Source: Chlorokybus atmophyticus
Lineage: Eukaryota > Plantae > Mesostigma and Chlorokybus algae
Assembly: GCA_009103225.1 (NCBI GenBank)
Contig: RHPI01002451.1
Location: forward strand, 1-14,528
DNA: 14,528 nucleotides
Direction: 5' to 3'
The position numbers were made by a program, and so were the translations under genes. Positions 1 to 14,528 of the stretch are shown here, piece after piece. The notes under the pieces were generated by a model. That model searched no databases and had not been told where the DNA came from. It worked only from the letters and a program-made list of their open reading frames with translations. Each line of letters starts with the position of its first letter. The first letter of the stretch is position 1.

Positions 1-112
1 CTGGTCCCTTACGCTGAGGAGGTCTGTTCTTCCCCCTGTAGCCTTGCTCTTCCTTGCGAACACTGGCGTTGTTGTTGTTGTTACTACCCCCAGCGTTGTT
101 GCTGTTGTGGGC
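1..112 (-). pseudogene. In-frame continuation of Gag copy 1 beyond the TGA
   Basis: After the TGA the same frame reads AHNSNNAGGSNNNNNASVRKEEQGYRGKNRPPQRKGP to the window edge. This matches GYRGKNNPPKQK in copy 2. Confidence 0.7.
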
Positions 113-1696
113 TCAAGTGTTGTTGCTATTGTAGCTACTGAAGTGGTTGCCAGTGTGGCCTCCAGTGTTGTTGCTGTTGTAGCCACTAAAGTTGTTGCCA
201 GTGTGGCCTCCAGTGTTGTTGCTGTTGTAGCCACCGGAGTAGTTGTGGTTGTAGCTGTTGGCGGGCCTCAACTCTGGGAACTTGAGCCAGCAGACTGACT
301 CCAAATGACCAGTCTTGTGACAGTGGTCGCAAACCAAAGTTGAGTATTCTTCGGTGCACTCCTTTTGGTAGTGCCCATGCCGTCCACAGCGATGACACAG
401 CACAGGGGCAGCAAGTGCAGCATGAGCTGACCGTTTCCCTTTGTCGCGTGCTGGTGGAGCGTCCCGGCCACGGTCGCGGCGAGGAGGCTCAGTTGTCGTG
501 CTGACTACAGGCCGTACGGCGCTGCGGTTGGTGTCCAGCACTGCCTTCTCATACACCAAGCGCTTGTGAATGGCTTGCGCAGTCTCGAAGGCTTCTTTGA
601 GGGTATAGCCAAGGGGCCTGCTGTAGTTCAGAGTCAGGCGTGTCGACTCGCTCAGAGCAGCATCCAACTCATTAACGTATATCACTGCAGCAGCCTCCTC
701 ACTGACAGTCTTGTACTCAGTGTCCTTCAGCAGACCTTCCAGTCTGATGTACAAGCGGAGGGGATCCTCATTGGGCTTGCGTCGGAAGCGTCTCAGCTCC
801 TCAACCTTGCTGGTGGTCTGAGGCGGGAATTCCGCACCTTTGAAGGTGCGGCGCAGGGCAGCGTACATGTCCTTGAGTGGAGAATCAGAGATGGCAGCAC
901 CTACGGAGATGGCTGGTGCGCGCAGTGCTACTGACCCGAGGGTGAAAGTACTGCCTCCTGCACGAGAGCCAGGTGTTGCTGGAGGTAGAGGAGTACCCCA
1001 CTCTGCGGCTGCCGCTTGCTGTACAGCTCTTTGTTCCTTAATGATTATGGCAGAACGGTCAAGGATGCGGACTCGACGTGTGGCCTCCTTGGACTTGACT
1101 TCTGCAGGGGTCAAGTTGACAAGTACCAACTCTGGTTCCTCCTCCTCTGCCTGCTTGAGAGCTGCAGCTATGGACAAGCCTGTTACTGCAACTGAAGTGG
1201 CAGGTGGAACAACACCTGCTGGACGGTGCAGAGATGCAGATGCTATGGTGCTGGCAAGCTCGCCATAGCCGTTTACTCGATGCAGTTCAGCAACGGACTT
1301 CCAGACATCGTGTGCTTCATGATCAAGATACTGAGCAGCAATGTGGAAAGAGATCTCATCTGACCAGTCTTTGTTCTTCAGAGCTTGCTGCCGCATCTTG
1401 GAGTGGAACTTGATGATGAACTCATCCAGCGAGGTGGTGCCGGCACGTCCGGAGAAGCGCAGGGATGTGGTTGAACTGGAAGATTCCATCTCGTTGTCGT
1501 CGCTGTCCGATGATAGTGGAGAAGCTTGATGACGAGGAGTAGAGTGGAGCGGGGTGAAGCTGGAGATGGAGCGCGAGCCTCTGCTGCTGCGGTCGATGCT
1601 CCCGTCACTGGTCCGCTCGTAGGTGAGGTTGGTGGTTGGGCTCCAACTGCTGAGGTCACCCTCGTCTATTGGGGAGAACGGGGTGGGCCTGCTCAT
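113..1696 (-). CDS. gag: LTR-retrotransposon Gag (capsid plus two CCHC zinc knuckles), family copy 1; TGA at 113-115 is probably premature
   Basis: 527-aa ORF. It has a capsid-like N-terminal motif (FSGRAGTTSLDEFIIKF...AAQYLDHEAHDVW), an MHR-like segment (ELRRFRRKPNEDPLRLYIRLEGLL), and knuckles CHRCGRHGHYQKEC (356-397) and CDHCHKTGHLESVC (290-331). It is collinear with the degraded paralog at 8149-10040. Confidence 0.85.
   Translation of the reverse strand: MSRPTPFSPIDEGDLSSWSPTTNLTYERTSDGSIDRSSRGSRSISSFTPLHSTPRHQASPLSSDSDDNEMESSSSTTSLRFSGRAGTTSLDEFIIKFHSKMRQQALKNKDWSDEISFHIAAQYLDHEAHDVWKSVAELHRVNGYGELASTIASASLHRPAGVVPPATSVAVTGLSIAAALKQAEEEEPELVLVNLTPAEVKSKEATRRVRILDRSAIIIKEQRAVQQAAAAEWGTPLPPATPGSRAGGSTFTLGSVALRAPAISVGAAISDSPLKDMYAALRRTFKGAEFPPQTTSKVEELRRFRRKPNEDPLRLYIRLEGLLKDTEYKTVSEEAAAVIYVNELDAALSESTRLTLNYSRPLGYTLKEAFETAQAIHKRLVYEKAVLDTNRSAVRPVVSTTTEPPRRDRGRDAPPARDKGKRSAHAALAAPVLCHRCGRHGHYQKECTEEYSTLVCDHCHKTGHLESVCWLKFPELRPANSYNHNYSGGYNSNNTGGHTGNNFSGYNSNNTGGHTGNHFSSYNSNNT
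116..233. repeat. 48-bp coding tandem repeat (about 2.5 units; YNSNNTGGHTGN[N/H]FS[G/S])
   Basis: Units start at 131 and 179 (gtagc[t/c]act[g/a]aagt[g/t]gttgccagtgtggcctccagtgttgttgctgtt), with a partial unit at 116-130. Confidence 0.9.
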
Positions 1697-1883
1697 ACAG
1701 CTGGTCCAGAGGTGAAAGGGTAGAGTGCTTGTGCTCTACCGTCTATCCTGATGCTGTTACCACCCAACACACTAGTGCTTGTGCGCACTATGTGATGACA
1801 ATGATAACGAATGCCCAGCGATGTATCCCTGGGTGCAGACTGCACTATCTGATGCAGATTGCAACACTCACTTGTGCAAAGAG

Positions 1884-1891
1884 GGTGACAC
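1884..1891 (-). promoter_or_regulatory. Putative self-priming PBS of copy 1 (sense GTGTCACC)
   Basis: It directly follows the LTR end ...GACTTACA. It does not start with TGG, so it is not a 3'-CCA tRNA PBS. It is complementary to sense GGTGACAC at 2217-2210. Confidence 0.65.
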
Positions 1892-2372
1892 TGTAAGTCA
1901 ACAAGCCACTACGATAGGTAGTGCTGTGGACACAGTTGTTTGCATGAGTGGATAGAATGATACACTGCTAAGTGAGGTGAATGGGTGTGCAACACGTGGA
2001 TACAACACCCTGACTACTGAAACAACACACCATCGTCAAGCTCACAGCAATGACAGGCACATCGCACAAGAGCATGCACCGTGTCGCACGCAGTAAGGGA
2101 ATTCTTGGCAACCGGGGCAGCGTGCTTCCAGTTCAAGTCGCTTCACAAGCTCTTTAGAAACAGAGTCTTTACTTCTTAGTACTTCTAGTACTCACAGTAC
2201 TCACATACAGTGTCACCAGCCAGTCTGGTGACGTGACTTCCTACTTATACATGTCAAATCATGACTGTGCAGTGCCACGCGGGCACTAGGCCAACGGTCA
2301 CATCGAGGCCTCATGCTATTTCGGAAATCTCCTAAGACTCGATATAGCACATGTGTTATTAACAAACTTACA
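1892..2372 (-). mobile_element. 5' LTR of Gag-family copy 1 (inner end at 1892; outer end uncertain, 2372 or about 2558)
   Basis: Starts TGTAAGT at 1892 with the perfect inverted ACTTACA at 2366-2372. It shows blockwise homology to 10261-10710. Homology to copy 2 continues to about 2520-2560, so U3 may be longer. Confidence 0.6.
2243..2249 (-). promoter_or_regulatory. TATA box of copy 1 LTR (TATAAGT)
   Basis: Lies 32 nt upstream of the GGTGACAC motif. Copy 2 has identical spacing. Confidence 0.6.
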
Positions 2373-2808
2373 ACTGATCAGCTACGCGCGGTCCCTACAG
2401 ACAGGTCTATAAAGTAGCCCTAGCTACATGCTACATGAGCGGTACAGTAGCTAGCAGTAGGCTGGGGCTCGCGCGGTCTTCATGCTGGTAGCCCGGGCGT
2501 GGGGCTGGGTGTAGGCATGCTCGAGAAGGACTGGCATGCGAGGGTAGATGGCATGACAAGGCGGATTGCAAGAGATGTTGGGCTGCGTTTTAGGAAGCAT
2601 CAACGGGAGCAGCCGCCACTCAACTACCAACTTGCAGTGGCTATCCTCATGCTCTATCTCCCAGACGAGCCTACCAAAAAGGTAACAGCTCTGTTGCCTT
2701 AAGTTGGTGAGTGACTGCATCAAGCAGCAACGCAGTGACCTTTGTGAAATTCAGCTAGCAAGACGGTGTTGACAGACTACTGCATGGCTGAAAATGAAAC
2801 TGGTTAAC

Positions 2809-2850
2809 GTAACTGGTCATCCTGTAACCGGTCATCCTGTAACTGGTCAT
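2809..2850. repeat. 15-bp tandem repeat, about 2.8 units (gtaa[c]yggtcatcct)
   Basis: gtaactggtcatcct / gtaaccggtcatcct / gtaactggtcat. Confidence 0.9.
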
Positions 2851-2928
2851 GATGCAGGTCCGAGGTTGGTTCAGGACTTTCGGCCAAACCACGAAGGATT
2901 GGGGTGACCTGAGTATCGCGAAAAGAAG

Positions 2929-3352
2929 TGTTGAAGGACTAGCATGCACATGTAGCTGAGGCAAGCATAGACACACAGAGACACAGCTACCGCCACCAGA
3001 GCATACACAAGTCACATCACATTCATCTATTACAAGTTGTCCGCTGGTTCTTATACCAGCCAGTTACACACACGTCTACGTTTGCAAGCACTGCGTAAGC
3101 TATACTCAGCCTTTTGACGCGCTCTAAGCTGCGTTGTCTTTCTTACAACCAGAGCTCTTTAACAAGCTCTTACACGCCTAATATGAGTAATTATATGCGG
3201 AGATACGAAGCAGTTAGTAAGGCTCTGGTCTGGAGTCCGGAGTCTGGTCCGACGACGCCATCTTGCTAAGTCCGGACCTAGTGCTCGTCCTTACGACCTT
3301 CTACTCCTGTGTGTAGGGTCGATGCTGATCGTATGTTGGAATACTCTCAACA
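2929..3352 (-). repeat. Copia 3' LTR, 424 bp, TGTTGA...TCAACA
   Basis: 6-bp terminal inverted repeats. The first 395 bp match 6935-7329 except for 2 C/T substitutions (3094 and 3111). Confidence 0.95.
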
Positions 3353-6808: not shown

Positions 6809-6920
6809 CTTTGTCGAGCCTGCCTTTCTTGCAGTTGACACCCAAGGCTCTGCTACCAACAAGCTACCGTAGTGTAGAACTACTATGCACACAGCTAGTC
6901 TCACACTCCTCAAGCGTAGT

Positions 6921-6934
6921 GTGGGCCCATAACC
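6921..6934 (-). promoter_or_regulatory. Copia PBS complementary to the anticodon region of initiator tRNA-Met (GGTTATGGGCCCAC)
   Basis: Immediately follows the 5' LTR end. This is the half-tRNA-iMet PBS type known from Drosophila copia, yeast Ty5 and Volvox Osser. Confidence 0.9.
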
Positions 6935-7329
6935 TGTTGAAGGACTAGCATGCACATGTAGCTGAGGCAAGCATAGACACACAGAGACACAGCTACCGCC
7001 ACCAGAGCATACACAAGTCACATCACATTCATCTATTACAAGTTGTCCGCTGGTTCTTATACCAGCCAGTTACACACACGTCTACGTTTGCAAGCACTGT
7101 GTAAGCTATACTCAGCTTTTTGACGCGCTCTAAGCTGCGTTGTCTTTCTTACAACCAGAGCTCTTTAACAAGCTCTTACACGCCTAATATGAGTAATTAT
7201 ATGCGGAGATACGAAGCAGTTAGTAAGGCTCTGGTCTGGAGTCCGGAGTCTGGTCCGACGACGCCATCTTGCTAAGTCCGGACCTAGTGCTCGTCCTTAC
7301 GACCTTCTACTCCTGTGTGTAGGGTCGAT
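6935..7329 (-). repeat. Copia 5' LTR, missing its outermost 29 bp
   Basis: Matches 2929-3323, then diverges after ...agggtcgat. The stretch gctgatcgtatgttggaatactctcaaca is absent. Confidence 0.92.
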
Positions 7330-7490
7330 CTCTTCAGTAGCGTTGTTGCTGATTGCAATGCTGAGTTAGCTAGATGCTAGCCTAGAACTGGTTGATTCTA
7401 CATTTGAATTTCAGCATTGCACATCATCTACCATTGTCACCACATGCATTGTGTACGCACGGAACCATGCATTATCAACAGATGCATACA

Positions 7491-7674
7491 ACACTTTGTT
7501 CAGGATCCGGCTTAAAACTATGGGACTCAGATTATGTTTAACTGCGACACTTCGTGCATACCGCAACCCACACTTTGTTCAGGATCTGGCATGAAACTTT
7601 GGGACTCAGTTTGTGTGCAACTACCACACTTCGTGCATACCGCAACCACAACTTTGTTCAGGATCTAGCATGAA
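7491..7674. repeat. 79-bp tandem repeat, about 2.3 units
   Basis: Units start at 7491, 7570 and 7649. Units 1 and 2 differ at 11 of 79 positions. Confidence 0.9.
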
Positions 7675-8148
7675 TGTTAAAGATTGTGATCGGAGCAAAT
7701 GAAACTTTTCATATAGACTACGGCTAAAAGCCTTTTACGGATCCAGACAGCACACAATGTGAAGGTGTAAGCTGATCACAAACTTAATACTAACCAGATC
7801 AATCACAAAGATAAGGATGTGGACGAAACCACTGATTAGAAATAACAAAGAATGACACCTGATCCACTGCAAAGTGCCCACCAAGGTTAAAACATTATTG
7901 AGGATGCAGAGGTAAACAACCACTGTATAGCATTAGGATCAATGTTCTTAATGCATGATCTATCCAGCACTGAGTGCAGGATTTGGCCATTATTAAGTTC
8001 AAGAAAATACGGATACCAAATTTAATGCACGCCTTCTGTTTCATCTTAATGGCAGCTGAATACCAAACTAAGTTGTGACTAAAGCAAGAAAAGAGGTAGA
8101 AATCAGTACCCGGTTGCTATTAGATACCCGATTAAGTTACAGCTGGAT

Positions 8149-10040
8149 CTAAAACAAGTTGTGGTCCAAGCCAGACTGTTGGGGGGCCATTTCTACCGGT
8201 GCTGTGGAGGATGGCCCGGCGTCCCCTCGAGTTCGCCGTGGTGGCTGTACGCACGTAGGTGGGGTGACTTTCTTATGTTTCACTCCCATTGCTGCCGAAC
8301 GTGCCGTGTAGCGTGTGCGATATTCATCCTCCCTAACCTTCAGCATCGCGTGAAACTCATCCATCTGTGCTGTGCAGACAGCAACCACCTCTGTATTCTC
8401 CATCATAGGCGCCTTGCGGGCGGCGTTGCTTGCCTTGGGTCCAATTTAATGGTTCTTTTTTTGTTTCGGAGGGTTGTTCTTTCCCCGATAGCCGTTGTTG
8501 GCTGGCTCCTTGCCTTTATTGCCGTTATTGTTGTTGTTGTCGTAACCGCTGCTGCTGCCATTGTCGCTGCCTAAGGGTCTCGACTCAGAGTGCTTGGCGT
8601 AGCAGGCTGTCTCTAAGTGCCCGGTCTTGCGGCAGTGGTCACACACCAGGTTCCCGTATTCCTCCGTGCAGTCCTTCTGGTAGTGGCCGTGTCGACCACA
8701 CCGATGGCAGACGACAAGAGCAGGTAGTGCAGCGTGAACTGACCTCGCAGGAGATTGAGGTGTGTTGGTGGGATAAGACTTGCGGCCGTGTCGGCTAGGG
8801 TCTGGTGCAGAGGCAGAAGCACACGAGGGACCAGAGTTCATGTCCAATACGGCTCTCATCCACACCTGGGTTCATGGATTGCCTGGGCTGTTTTAAAGGC
8901 TTGAAGCAGCGAATACCCTTGTGGTCGGGTGTTGTTGAGAGCGTTGTCCACTGTATTATTCAGTGGAGGCTCCAGTTGGCTGACGAACACCACGGCGGCA
9001 GCTTCGTCGCTGAGGATCTTCTTGTTGGTGTCCAGCAGCAGCTTGACCATACGGGTGTAAGTGCGCAGAGAATCCTTCCCTGCCTTGCGCCTGAAGTAAC
9101 GCCACTCCTCCACGTTCTGACTGGTCTGTGGTGGGAATGTGCGCCGAAGCGCCAGATACAAGTCCAGCAAAGGTGACAACGTGCGGTCCACCCTAACAAT
9201 GAGGGCGGGTTCTCGTATGCTGACCAAGCTCGAAGACCGTGTACTGCCTGCAGCTGTTTCTCGGGTTCCCTGCGTCCTTGTCCGGATTGGAGTATCAGGT
9301 ACGATGACGCGCTGACGTGCTTGTGCTTCCTCGAGTGTAGTTTGTTGCTCGGTCGTAGCTTGAACGCAAAGAGTTGTACCTGGGACCGGCGTGCTTATTG
9401 CGCTGCCGCCAACTCGCGGTCGACCATGGCAGGAGCAACTGCTAGTATATCTGCTACAGCTGTCAACTGTGCTGCGGCCAAAGCTTCCGTAAGAGTAGGG
9501 CCTTGCAGTGGGACAGCTGGAATAATGGGCGTGGCAGGGAAGCCAGGAGTTGATGCTTCTTTGGGCAGAGCTCCGGTGCCGGCCAGAACTCCGTACCCTC
9601 CAATCTCATGCCGTGCAGCAACCGACCTATACACCTCATGTGCCTCGTGGTCTAAGCAAGTTGCAACCATGCGAAAAACATTACATCTGACCAGCTGGGA
9701 GTCGTGATCGAATGGTAGCTCATCCTGGAATCGAACTTGATGATCCATTCGTCTAGTGGTGTTGAGCCAGCACGTCCGGAGAGGGTGAGACCATGAGTGG
9801 AACCGGATGCCTCCATGTCGTTGCTGTCGAGCTAATTGATGAAGCTTTCGACTTGACAAGACTGAGTATGTCTAAAGCGGGGTACTGGTGAAGACCGGGG
9901 TCTGTCGATGTTGTCGTCGCCCTCTTCTTCGCCGTATCGTCCGTAGGATATGTTCAAGTCCAATCACCTGTTGAAGTCGCTGGTGGTCTCCTCGGCCACA
10001 AGGGAAAGAAAATGTACCGATGAGTGGACTCCCTGACTAG
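8149..10040 (-). pseudogene. gag: Gag family copy 2, frameshifted pseudogene (paralog of 113-1696) with C-terminal extension
   Basis: Fragments in different frames align to copy 1: LSGRAGSTPLDEWIIKFDSRM, CLDHEAHEVYRSVA..GYGVLA, SPLLDLYLALRRTF-PPQTSQNVEEWRYFRRK, GYSLLQAFKTAQAIH, CHRCGRHGHYQKDCTEEYGNLVCDHCRKTGHLETAC. Several frameshifts (about 9675, 9300-9370, 8860). ORF 8149-8406 is in frame with 8446-8865 across one TAA. No ATG was found at the expected start. Confidence 0.88.
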
Positions 10041-10252: not shown

Positions 10253-10260
10253 GATGACAC
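10253..10260 (-). promoter_or_regulatory. Putative self-priming PBS of copy 2 (sense GTGTCATC)
   Basis: Follows the identical LTR end TTGACTTACA and is complementary to sense GATGACAC at 10606-10599. Confidence 0.65.
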
Positions 10261-10710
10261 TGTAAGTCAACAGCTACTACTAGAGTAGTGCTGCTTATAC
10301 AGTTTCTTATATGAGGTCGAGATAATTCCACTGTTAAGTGAGGTGTATGAATGCAGCAAGTCGTGGATACCACACTTATGCGGACTACACAACGTGCACC
10401 CACACAACCACAATCACATCAAGTGACAAGCAATGCACGTGTGCATACACTGCATTCTCTCACGTGTAGATGTGTGTTGGCCGAGGCGGTGAGGTGATGC
10501 AGTCACATCAAGCCACCACCTTCAGAGAGCAAGTCGCGAGCACTCCGAAGATCAACATCCATATTTCTTAGTTCCAAGTCTTTCAGTTCTCACTTATAGT
10601 GTCATCAACGTACAGAGACTAAGTCCTAGGCCCTTATAGTCAAGTGACACCTGTTTAATTCTAAATTGACGACTAGTTTATAAAATGACCTAGATCAAGC
10701 ATAAGTTACA
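10261..10710 (-). mobile_element. LTR of Gag-family copy 2 (outer end uncertain, 10710 or about 10893)
   Basis: TGTAAGTCAACA at 10261 is identical to copy 1, and GTTACA lies at 10705-10710. Shared blocks include cactgytaagtgaggtg, cgtggatac.acac and ttacaact. Confidence 0.6.
10632..10638 (-). promoter_or_regulatory. TATA box of copy 2 LTR (TATAAGG)
   Basis: Lies 32 nt upstream of the GATGACAC motif. Confidence 0.6.
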
Positions 10711-10792
10711 ACTCGCGACGAATCAGCTGGTACGGCTTATACTAGGTACCTACGAAGACTGACCAGCAACTGCTTCGTGTCGCGTGGGACTC

Positions 10793-10887
10793 ATGCCGGT
10801 AGCCGGGGTCGATGTCTGGCTGTAGGCACGATTGATAAAAAGGGTTGTCGATGCTGGTAGCACGGGAACGATGCTTGGCTGTAGGCA
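10793..10887. repeat. Duplicated 36/37-bp motif (58-bp spacing), also present once at 2482-2517
   Basis: atgccggtagccggggtcgatgtctggctgtaggca and atgctggtagcacgggaacgatgcttggctgtaggca, versus atgctggtagcccgggcgtggggctgggtgtaggca in copy 1. Confidence 0.75.
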
Positions 10888-10904
10888 TCAACAAGGAAGT
10901 TGGC

Positions 10905-13900
10905 CCCTCCTGGACCGCTGACATGACATCCTTTCGGCTTCCCACGTGTTGTGTCAAACACCATACCCTTTCCATTTCACCAAGTAATTACTTGGTGAAA
11001 ACTTATAAGTTGCCGCGCGTCCGTGTCGGGGCTGACAGTGACTCAGGATTGTTTCCACCTCGTACTCAAAATATCCTCGCCATCCACTGCGACAGGGGGT
11101 GGAGGAGGTTGAACCCGACCGTCTTAACGGTATGATTTTAATACACTCACATGAAACACGTTATGTATACGTATTGTGGTAACTCCAAACGATACGCGTG
11201 AGTGCCGACCCAATCAACCACTTTAAAAAGGGCGTATCCATTGAGGGAAAAACTTTCGGGTACCCATTCCCTTGATAGATATATTTTTAGTGCTTAAAAG
11301 CACCAAATTGCCCGCATCATAGACGGCATGCCTACGATGCTTATCAGCTTGGGCTATTTGCCTGTCTTGCACTGCGCGCAAACAGCTTTTTGCCAATGCT
11401 AGCCTGTCTTGCATGGCCGCAGCCATCTCGCGCGCTGCAGGCGCGCGAGTCAAGTCGCTAGCGGCAATTTAATACTCGCAGGACTTTGTGGATGCACTCC
11501 GTTATTCAAGAAAAACGGAGTTTCCTGCACACTCTCTTGCATTGTTAATCGCGAATTCAGCCATTGAAAGACAAATATCCCAATCAGACTGATTCAAACT
11601 CACGTAATGCCGAATGGTTTTCTCAATCACTTGATTGGCGCGTTCAGTTGGACCATCAGTCTGCGGAAGACCAGCGGTGCTCATGTGCTGCTATATCGAC
11701 AGGAAGTTGTTTGGAAGTTGCATAGCGACTTTCAAAACTGAGCCACACACCTCGGGTCACGGCCAAAGACAACGTTGCGAGGCAAGCCATGGAACTTGAA
11801 CACTAACGCGACAAAAACCATCGCTAGATCATGGGAGCCTATCACCGTACGGCAAGGAACAATGTGAGTAATTTTAGTCAAACGATCCACAAATACTGCA
11901 ACCGCAATATGACCCAATGCTGTGTCAGGGAGCTTAGTGCTAAGGTCTATACTCACACTTTCCCACTTATTGTCAGGGACTGTTTTTGTCGCACTAGCCC
12001 AGCGGGCTTTAGACGTAATGGTTTGTCACGTTGACATTTGTCACACGTGTCCACATACCGCTTCACATCAGCAGGCAACGATGGCCACTAATACAATTGT
12101 TGCGCTGCCTTAGTGGTCTTGCGACTACCAAAGTGCCCAGCATACGGTGGATCGTGTATATCCGCTATGCATATTACATGCAGTTCAGCATGGTCAGTTA
12201 TCACCAAACTGTTGCTCATGTAATACAGATTGTCGCATTTGTTAAACTTTTGTAACTACGGGTCCAAAGCGTACCCCTGTACAGCTTGCACAAACTCATC
12301 ATCAGGAGACAATGTGCTGCGTGTCGCGAGTAATTGCGCGCGCATCACCGCCGGTAATGACGGGCAGCGACTTAAAGGGTCAGCCACATTGGTTCTGCCC
12401 GGCCGATACACCCAATTAAAGGTAAATCGGAACAAAAACTCATTTTAGCGTGCTTGCTGTCTCCACAAGTTTTGCTGTATTAATACATCAACGGGTTGTG
12501 ATCAGTCACAACAGCAAACTGAACACCCTCTAAGTAACATCGCCATGTCTCAAGAGCATGAACTAAACCCAATTCTTCCGTTGTCATAGTGTAGTTCACC
12601 TCTGCAGGAATGAACTTCCTACTACTCTCATAAGCACAAGGTCTGCCATCTTGCAACAGTACCGCACCACACCCAAGTATTGATGCGTCACTGACCACTG
12701 TGAAGTGTTTGTCCCAATTTAGCAGTGCTAACACCGGCGCTGATGTTGAAGCCAACTTCACCTTTTGCATAGCAGCTTCATGTGCTGTCGTTCAAGTGAA
12801 CGGGGCATCTTTATGCAGCATTTTGGTCAAAGGCATGACAACTGTCGAGTACCCCATCATGAAAATGCAAAAGTAGTTTGCCAACCCTATAAACGACCTT
12901 TGTTGATGAACATTTTGAGGTTGGGGCCACTCTTTCACAACCTGCACTCTTCGAGGGTTAGGCTTGATACCCGCACCACTCACAATGTGACCAAGAAAGG
13001 GCACCTTCGTTTTACAAATCTCACACTTGGTGAGATTTGTTAACAAACGATGATTGCGCAATCTTCAAAACATCGCTTCCAAGTGTTGCCTATGTTCTTC
13101 CTTTGTTTTACAGAAGACAATGATGTCATCCAAGTATATCATGATATGTTGACCAAGCATATCATCGAAAATTTTATTCATTTCCTTCTGAAACACAGCA
13201 AGTGCATTAGTCAATTAAAAAGGTACACTCTGTATTAATAATGGCCCGTAGGTGTTTTGAATGCTGTATTATAGACATCTAAAGGGTGAATCCGGATTTG
13301 ATGATAACCACTTGTCAAGTCTAGCGTACTAAAGTATGCATATCCTGACAACGGGTATCCGTTTTGTACCGTGATGTTGTTTGGAGCACGGTAATCCACA
13401 CACATGCGCAACTTCCCGTTCTTTTTCAAACTAAACAAGATGGGTGCGCCAAAGGGTGAAGAACTTGGTTCAAGCAATCCCTTTTCCGATAACTCTTTTA
13501 TCTGCGTTTCCATTTCCCCCCTCTCACGAGGGCTCAACCTATATATAGGCCGAAATTGAGGCTCACTATCAGGAATCAAAGGTATTATGTGCCCGACACC
13601 TCGATCAGGGGACAAGCCCGGCAACTCATCTGACAATACATCCTGAAACTTCTCAATGATGTCCGCCACACCTTCTGTATTGCCTGGCACTACATGATCA
13701 TTCGATGTTAAGTGCATTGGAAAGGCAGGTGTGTTTTTACATAACGCACGCTTCACTTAATGCGCCGTAAGTAACGCAGGTTTTTTTTGCTTGTATTTCA
13801 ATCTATGCGACCCCAGCACGGACAAAGTGATGCGCTTACGCCTATTCTTTGCTGTGCACAACCGTGCAACAATATCTAACGTCATAGACACTTGATCTTG

Positions 13901-14150
13901 CCATTCTTGGCCAAATACCACATCAACACCAGCTATGTTAATGGGTACTATGATGAAAGTTTAATTGGCTTGATAACTACCAATGTTAACTTTCAACTTC
14001 ATTTCACCTTTTACTGATAACGCACCCCCAGTACCAGCAGCTGAGAAGGCTGAGGGTTTACACGCTATCTTATTGCGCATAACCCATTTTCTTCAACGTA
14101 ATTATGCGTTGCCCCGGTGTCAACCAAGAATGAGCTAGTAATACCCTGTG
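10905..14150 (-). pseudogene. pol: Ty3/Gypsy chromovirus pol (PR-RT-RNase H-IN-chromodomain), heavily degraded
   Basis: Protease FLVDTGATHNY (DTG at 14113-14121). RT SSSPFGAPILF, MCVDYR, LDLTSGYHQ and YLDD (13125-13136). RNase H VSDAS...TDHNPL (12480-12770). Integrase HDPPYAGH/CDKC (12034-12156), core VDRLTK...PQTDGPTER and GPF-like motif. Chromodomain EYEVETILSH...YLVKWKGYG.HNTWE (about 10905-11067). Many stops and frameshifts. Confidence 0.92.
10975..11000. repeat. Perfect 26-bp palindrome
   Basis: tttcaccaagtaa|ttacttggtgaaa, overlapped by the 12-bp palindrome aacttataagtt (11000-11011). Confidence 0.95.
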
Positions 14151-14332
14151 AAGGTCCACATTAAAGGTACTACTCGCCCTTGAAAGGTAGCCAAGAGACG
14201 TGACTGATGTGTGGGTTAATCAATAATGCTGACAACCGCACTGCCCCTGTCTCACGCTTTGTGAACTATTTCAACACGGTTCCCCCTTGAGTATGCTTTA
14301 GCCACGGTCCATGATACTTGGGCACTATAACN

Positions 14333-14528
14333 ACTTATTGTCAGGGACTGTTTTTGTCGCACTAGCCCAGCGGGCTTTAGACGTAATGGTTTGTCACGTT
14401 GACATTTGTCACACGTGTCCACATACCGCTTCACATCAGCAGGCAACGATGGCCACTAATACAATTGTTGCGCTGCCTTAGTGGTCTTGCGACTACCAAA
14501 GTGCCCAGCATACGGTGGATCGTGTATA
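14333..14528 (-). repeat. Exact 196-bp duplicate of the integrase zinc-finger region 11965-12160, starting right after an N
   Basis: Base-for-base identical by eye, offset 2368 bp. The N is at 14332. Confidence 0.9.

Follow-up and report, generated by a model that had tools for sequence, protein, structure and literature searches.

The window, by which we mean the whole 14,528-nt stretch of Chlorokybus atmophyticus DNA analysed here (contig RHPI01002451.1), carries on its minus strand the LTR-leader-gag segment of a Ty3/gypsy retrotransposon with a chromodomain, present as two diverged copies (Table 1). The two copies are only ~68-74% alike, where they can be aligned at all; repeat-induced point mutation was considered as a source of this divergence and ruled out, the ratio of transitions to transversions being 218:181. 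Copy 1 runs from unique DNA through a whole LTR and a primer site into gag, with no split repeat. Copy 2 is preceded by a decayed pol whose domain order (preserved in pieces only) is that of Ty3/gypsy elements with a C-terminal chromodomain. A methyltransferase was not seen in the window, and the stretch between gag and protease lies outside the window or has been lost.

Table 1. Features of the window, ordered in the reading direction of the minus strand.
Feature	Position	Strand	Remarks
Decayed Ty3/gypsy pol	10891..14331	-	Protease motif, RT, RNase H, integrase zinc finger and core, half chromodomain; precedes LTR copy 2
Half chromodomain (E = 7e-5)	10957-11160	-	Within the decayed pol before LTR copy 2
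Purine run AGGAGGGG, candidate polypurine tract	10904..10911	-	13 nt upstream of LTR copy 2 start; role inferred
LTR copy 2, old and decayed	10261..10890	-	Begins at the pol stop codon TGA (10890-10888)
TATAAG box, copy 2	10633..10638	-	Predicted RNA start 32 nt downstream
Predicted RNA 5' end and self-primer arm, copy 2, GATGACACTATAAGT	10592..10606	-	
Primer-binding arm, copy 2, ACTTACAGTGTCATC	10253..10267	-	Best duplex partner, -19.1 kcal/mol
Decayed gag, copy 2	8460..9830	-	Stops and frameshifts; ~68% alike to gag1 across 226 nt
Unrelated AT-rich DNA, ~0.8 kb	between decayed gag2 and copia-type element		
Copia-type element	7329-2929	-	395-nt repeats, 99.5% alike
Low-copy DNA, ~330 nt	between copia-type element and LTR copy 1		
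LTR copy 1, 5' LTR of a young-looking multi-copy element	1892..2602	-	5' end approximate (2570-2604)
TATAAG box, copy 1	2244..2249	-	Predicted RNA start 32 nt downstream
Predicted RNA 5' end and self-primer arm, copy 1, GGTGACACTGTATGT	2203..2217	-	Family majority A, not T, at 2205
Second, weaker U5 partner of RNA 5' end (CCTCACTTAGCAGTGT...)	1956..1977	-	-17.3 kcal/mol; used in minimum-energy fold
Primer-binding arm, copy 1, ACTTACAGTGTCACC	1884..1898	-	Best duplex partner of RNA 5' end, -23.5 kcal/mol
gag ORF, copy 1	113..1696	-	527 aa; zinc knuckle; repetitive N/G/S-rich tail

Several further features of the window deserve mention. The tail of gag1 (window 1-269, minus strand) contains 24-nt repeats that encode an N/G/S/T-rich stretch. 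Past the TGA of gag1 (115-113) the frame remains open and is homologous to gag of copy 2 as it continues, which makes this codon a stop that is either premature or read through; copy 2, too, has an open frame for ~100 codons past its gag stop. The AT-rich DNA between the decayed gag2 and the copia-type element holds two tandem 79-nt units (7484-7641), which are 84% alike. The copia-type element itself encodes gag, protease, integrase and RVT_2; BLAST places the repeat ends at points without TG...CA, no target-site duplication stands out, the 5' repeat is not followed by a tRNA-Met-type site, and at ~3.6 kb the internal part is short for copia. Finally, positions 11965-12160 (196 nt, integrase zinc-finger region) are duplicated exactly at 14333-14528, beside the N at 14332, which is probably a scaffold join or an assembly artefact within the decayed pol.

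An earlier note on this sequence had proposed that the family primes its own reverse transcription in the manner of Tf1, and all of the sequences it quoted were found on the minus strand where it had placed them. In copy 1 the LTR ends with ...TTGACTTACA at 1892 and is followed by GTGTCACC (1891-1884), and GGTGACAC is located at 2217-2210, 32 nt past the T of TATAAG (2249). The perfect 12-bp pairing that had been reported for this copy was confirmed (GGTGACACTGTA at 2217-2206 is the exact reverse complement of 1895-1884) and could be extended: the repeat finder returns 15-nt arms at 93% in both copies, so that copy 1 also pairs at 14 of 15 positions. Copy 2 has GTGTCATC at 10260-10253 and GATGACAC at 10606-10599; here too the reported pairing of 14 out of 15 bp (10592-10606 with 10253-10267) was reproduced, and the spacing of 32 nt to the TATAAG box (10638) is exact in both copies. 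The second base of the inner arm is G in one copy and A in the other, matched by C or T in the outer arm. The mirrored base (G-C becoming A-U) therefore stands as one matched, compensatory change between copies 1 and 2, each of which carries one mismatch. By itself such a single change is weak evidence; we estimate the odds of a matching change at one given partner base at a few per cent for this level of divergence. From the TATA spacing only, the RNA is predicted to start at 2217 and 10606, with T/G as the -1/+1 bases in both copies.

To place copy 1 in its family, contigs of three public sequencing runs (Logan contigs) were placed on window positions 1-2950. Contig depth ranges from 100 to 585 over 1-2574 and drops to 6-10 from 2575 upward, where the neighbouring low-copy DNA begins. 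Of the contigs placed from run X1, 61 out of 313 are at least 99% alike to copy 1, which, along with the long open gag, makes the family of copy 1 look young; this family has tens of copies. At position 2205 every covering contig of the three runs has the base that removes the mismatch of copy 1, and with this base the duplex becomes perfect over 15/15 bp (GGTGACACTGTAAGT with ACTTACAGTGTCACC). The reads also contain a third, diverged LTR variant (loose end at 2220), in which GTATAAGTAGG is retained in the same register while most bases between the TATA box and the arm differ from the window. Contigs depart from the window sequence at two points, 2365 and 1896, the loose ends at the latter being similar in two organisms.

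An exhaustive HMMER search over 1.8 billion representative proteins found a closest gag relative that is only 34% identical, from which it follows that other copies of the family are not in the protein collections. A word-indexed search with gag1 gave no match, and the exact DNA pattern of the junction had 0 matches in metagenome contigs. Three of the distant gag relatives carry a pair of complementary arms of their own. The first (L001) is a gag-only element on a 127-kb eukaryotic metagenome contig, where a pair of LTRs defines the LTR end; it has a perfect 16-nt inverted repeat with arm one within the LTR and arm two starting from the last LTR base. The second (L003) is a tandem array of 5-kb units (5035 nt, 96% alike) with a perfect 17-nt pair, 306 nt apart, which starts at the A of CA and ends 94 nt before the gag ATG. 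The third (L004) is a Closterium element in which gag and a DNA methyltransferase are fused; its pair is perfect over 14 nt, and there is a weaker second partner as well. The sequences of these pairs are unrelated to one another and to those of the window. Two other gag relatives (L006 and L007) show no such pair, and their short contigs may stop before the LTR. Complementarity is thus kept despite sequence change, in one matched change and in the distinct pairs of L001, L003 and L004; the covariation for which the earlier note had suggested a check is seen once between the copies, in a within-family sample that is small.

The lack of TGG after the LTR was borne out as well: by sequence inspection TGG is absent from the first ~27 nt after ...ACTTACA in both copies. 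In two complete Closterium NIES-68 chromoviruses (L009 and L010), members of a clade that is a weak sister to the window pol, the same inspection did find sites resembling tRNA-Met after the LTR (TGGTATTCAGAGCC and TATCAGAGC), which we take to be of the tRNA-Met type. Neither of these two controls has a complement of at least 8 nt within its LTR. The internal complement is present in elements without a tRNA site and absent from the two that have one. The tRNA-Met site is the commonest type of primer site (PMC6317226). A tRNA scan found no tRNA genes in the window or in 8 loci.

With respect to the boundaries of the LTR, the earlier note had let it start with TGTAAGT at 2371, which is probably wrong, given that the repeat extends to ~2575-2604. 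Homology between copy 1 and copy 2 reaches as far as GTTGATGC at 2604-2597; position 2604 is the counterpart of the pol stop codon of copy 2, with the purine run 13 nt upstream, and 2605-2928 does not resemble the pol end. The idea that a chromodomain remnant lies upstream of copy 1 was rejected for this reason and for want of a Pfam match. The high-copy stretch to ~2575, the homology to 2604 and the unrelatedness to pol of the DNA beyond together give an LTR of ~680-710 nt, so that its length is probably ~700 nt and not 480. The heptamer TGTAAGT (2371-2365) is exactly complementary to ACTTACA at the LTR end, and equally to bases 9-15 of the family RNA start; as it mirrors the LTR end and contigs diverge there, the 480-nt model keeps some plausibility.

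The 3' end of LTR copy 1 (...ACTTACA, 1892) is an assumption made via the CA rule. On this assumption the primer-binding arm of copy 1 consists of the last 7 nt of the LTR (1898-1892) and the 8 nt beyond (1891-1884), or, for the 15-bp duplex, 7 bp inside the LTR (U5) and 8 nt outside. In L001 and L003 the duplex begins at the last LTR base, but here 7 of its 15 pairs fall within the assumed LTR; either the LTR end or the cut site must be misplaced. The primer of ~8 nt suggested earlier likewise hangs on the assumed ...ACA end, whereas the family duplex measures 15 bp; primer length could be anywhere from 8 to 15 nt, and up to 15 if the LTR ends further upstream.

Could the match between the arms be a product of chance, aided by a TG/CA-rich composition and by the shared ancestry of the two copies? 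We generated 5000 dinucleotide-preserving shuffles of the LTR and scored perfect complements to a 20-nt window at the junction. For copy 1 a perfect complement of at least 12 nt occurs in 6/5000 shuffles (~0.001), and for copy 2 its 9-nt perfect run is matched in 256/5000; with a TG/CA-rich LTR, chance matches are likelier than uniform odds imply. Moreover, copies 1 and 2 stem from one ancestor, so that conservation between them does not represent two independent events, and the number of compensatory changes seen is one. Against chance, the duplex sits at the sole place where it is functionally required, it reaches 15/15 with the base read at 2205 by every covering contig, and its arms form islands of identity within an LTR that is otherwise hard to align. 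In addition, L001, L003 and L004 have perfect pairs of 14-17 nt at the same place with unrelated sequences, each of which is expected ~0.003 times or fewer per kilobase by estimate. The same position in copies that are ~74% alike, the fixed TATA spacing and the matched change are together beyond what chance would give, and we regard a chance origin as highly improbable.

Folding of the leader RNA gives a more nuanced picture. When the first 18 nt are scanned for duplexes against the whole leader, the region of the LTR end and primer site ranks first in both copies, at -23.5 kcal/mol for copy 1 and -19.1 kcal/mol for copy 2. A site in U5 ranks second (1977-1956, -17.3, in copy 1; 10343-10322, -15.5, in copy 2), and in the unconstrained minimum-energy folds of both copies the 5' end pairs with this second site and not with the primer-binding site. 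Forcing the duplex between 5' end and primer site costs 4.1 and 5.4 kcal/mol, out of -116 and -135. Given this small cost, the priming fold is an accessible alternative and not the predicted ground state. The second U5 site (1956-1977 and 10322-10343, minus strand) is conserved, and L004 likewise has one arm with two partners; this site may act as a switch between a closed fold and the priming fold.

These folds bear on an explanation in which the inverted repeat is a genuine RNA structure, one that would close R-U5 and act in packaging, dimerisation or translation control, with another RNA, namely an internal tRNA fragment or a small RNA pairing just after the LTR, serving as primer. The leader indeed has several conserved complementary segments, including the second U5 partner that the minimum-energy folds prefer, and half-tRNA primers without a TGG site are known in copia-type elements (PMC6317226). 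Half-tRNA priming has, however, been reported only in Ty1/copia lineages (PMC6317226). Furthermore, the second arm lies exactly at the LTR end, the position required of a primer site, in the window family as well as in L001 and L003, and no such complement exists in the elements with a tRNA-Met site, which fits the two kinds of site being alternatives. Consequently, we consider a purely structural role unlikely.

A different route of replication might also call for such a complement, if it served strand transfer or end-joining (compare the internal complementary regions of DIRS-type elements and the permuted-LTR gypsy elements) and not the formation of a primer. The best gag relative, L001, has a permuted layout A-internal-Y-A-Y (6876-9999) in which the polypurine tract AGGGGGGAA precedes Y; a palindrome, GACAG/CTGTC, is found at the Y/A junction, the tips read TGTCATG...CACGACA, and a 4-nt target duplication (CAAC) is present. 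This layout coexists in L001 with a clear self-primer pair. Units of pol-LTR-gag or tandem type recur in window copy 2, L003 and L005, and TGTAAGT at 2371-2365 mirrors the LTR end at a point where the read contigs diverge. On the other hand, the layout of copy 1 is ordinary, and in L001 the complement is placed as a self-primer/primer-site pair with a polypurine tract at hand, which argues that unusual integration does not replace priming. A role in strand transfer thus seems improbable to us. As to the recurrent arrangements themselves, the order pol, LTR, gag is seen at window 10891-10253, at L003 1-11711 and at L005 5279-10955 (Closterium), and in L009 (1318-12677) a 5.7-kb stretch, part of an element, is duplicated in tandem; recombination, integration of a multimer or circle, or assembly collapse could each account for this order.

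Overall, Tf1-like self-priming that replaces the tRNA primer is our best reading for the Chlorokybus family, and judging from the sequences we consider it likely. What the sequences show directly is that the arms are complementary, where they lie, that they are conserved, and that a tRNA-type site is lacking. It is this core of the earlier proposal that the data support best (no TGG site, the junction as strongest partner, the pairs in L001, L003 and L004, and controls without a complement), while its details, i.e. the RNA start, the 8-nt primer and the LTR start, are not established and the minimum-energy fold uses the second U5 site. In self-priming of this kind, the predicted transcription start is G(G/A)TGACAC, ~32 nt past the TATAAG box. 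From this start, 8-15 nt of RNA would fold back across ~305-325 nt of R-U5 and pair with the LTR end and the adjoining bases, a site that would stand in for the tRNA-binding site. The RNase H of the element would then cut the RNA at the end of the duplex, as in Tf1, and the freed 3' OH would prime minus-strand DNA. Since the plus strand would later copy the primer, the primer-binding site would be rewritten from the RNA 5' end in every cycle, which by that alone would keep the two sites matched. The matched change from G-C to A-U might accordingly be expected from the mechanism and not only from selection.

To determine the position of the family among chromoviruses, we compared its decayed RT-RNase H with the available hits. 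Across the 25 best-matching chromovirus hits listed, identity is 40-50%. In a tree of available hits, none of them a named Tf1, sushi or Tcn1 reference, it falls among the chromoviruses on a long branch, as a weak (83) sister to the Closterium clade. A search with the intact Closterium RT-RNase H gave many chromovirus matches, none of them a named Tf1, sushi or Tcn1 reference, and the RT piece matched just generic RVT_1 clusters from Streptophyta in the ESM Atlas. The window pol is no closer to the pol of L005 than to other chromoviruses. In Closterium, a single ORF of L004 (10001-12772) and of L005 (8772-10955) joins a gag-like N-terminus to a C5 DNA methyltransferase, with RT coming next in L004; because the pol of L005 has a chromodomain, these methyltransferase-carrying elements appear to be chromoviruses.

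To our knowledge, self-priming is a rare alternative to tRNA priming that has been proven only in Tf1 of fission yeast. The Tf1 primer comprises 11 nt just outside the LTR. Tf1 is the established case of self-priming, which has also been proposed for Tj1 and for elements ranging from fungi to vertebrates (PMC4600332). Among plant LTR elements it is predicted for 12% (Neumann et al. 2019, PMC6317226), and these predicted self-primers comprise TAR copia elements along with 83% of the Tcn1 chromoviruses that occur in mosses and clubmosses (PMC6317226). Tcn1-like elements have been reported as missing from those algae that were examined (Novikova et al. 2010, PMC2864245; PMC6317226), and the restriction to Tcn1 has been used as an argument for horizontal transfer of Tcn1 into plants (PMC6317226, PMC2864245). 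Literature text searches found no report of self-priming for Chlorokybus or other streptophyte algae.

The mechanism is therefore already known, and what is new is the lineage, i.e. the host range of self-priming. A probable self-priming chromovirus in one of the earliest-branching streptophyte algae, together with the pairs in Closterium and in environmental relatives, widens the known range, and this wider range weakens the argument for horizontal transfer of Tcn1. Tentatively, and with considerable doubt, the observations can be read jointly: self-priming would be old and vertically inherited in a green-lineage gypsy group (Chlorokybus, the gag-methyltransferase element of Closterium and two uncharacterised elements from environmental assemblies), not confined in plants to Tcn1, which is thought to be fungal by horizontal transfer, and the primer site of the present family would be unusually short at 8 nt, with a duplex that runs 7 bp into the LTR tip recognised by integrase. 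In practical terms, LTR annotation pipelines that seek tRNA sites would misjudge self-priming elements, and the young-looking family of copy 1 could serve as a testable system.

Compared with known systems, the family shares with Chlamyvir and other tRNA-Met-primed chromoviruses the chromodomain-bearing Ty3/gypsy type, its RT-RNase H falling within the chromovirus group, but it lacks the TGG-type site seen in L009 and L010; algal Chlamyvir has a tRNA-type primer site, assigned to tRNA-Met or tRNA-Ile or left undetermined (PMC6317226, supplement). Its gag is distantly related to that of the KnitGypsy-Dnmt3 elements, green algal gypsy elements with permuted LTRs and a methyltransferase (PMC5890265), and two distant gag relatives (P0021 and P0090) consist of gag and a DNA methylase. 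A self-primer/primer-site pair is likewise present in the Closterium member L004 of this methyltransferase-carrying, permuted-LTR clade, from which copy 1 differs by its ordinary LTR layout. With the Tcn1 clade of mosses and clubmosses it has in common that both are green-lineage chromoviruses with a chromodomain and predicted self-priming; the gag and pol of Tcn1 mostly occupy overlapping stretches in different frames, but in window copy 2 the frame continues open past the gag stop. Tf1/Tf2 of Schizosaccharomyces pombe and Tj1 of S. japonicus, self-primed Ty3/gypsy chromoviruses, resemble the present family in three respects: a primer site next to the 5' LTR that can pair with the start of their own RNA (described for Tf1 and Tj1 in PMC4600332; a predicted start in the present family), no tRNA site, and a chromodomain at the integrase C-terminus. 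The differences are that the host of the Chlorokybus family is a streptophyte alga, that its RNA start and cleavage are predicted, and that its duplex of 15 bp apparently extends 7 bp into U5 and 8 nt outside the assumed LTR, with the arms separated by a loop of ~305-325 nt.
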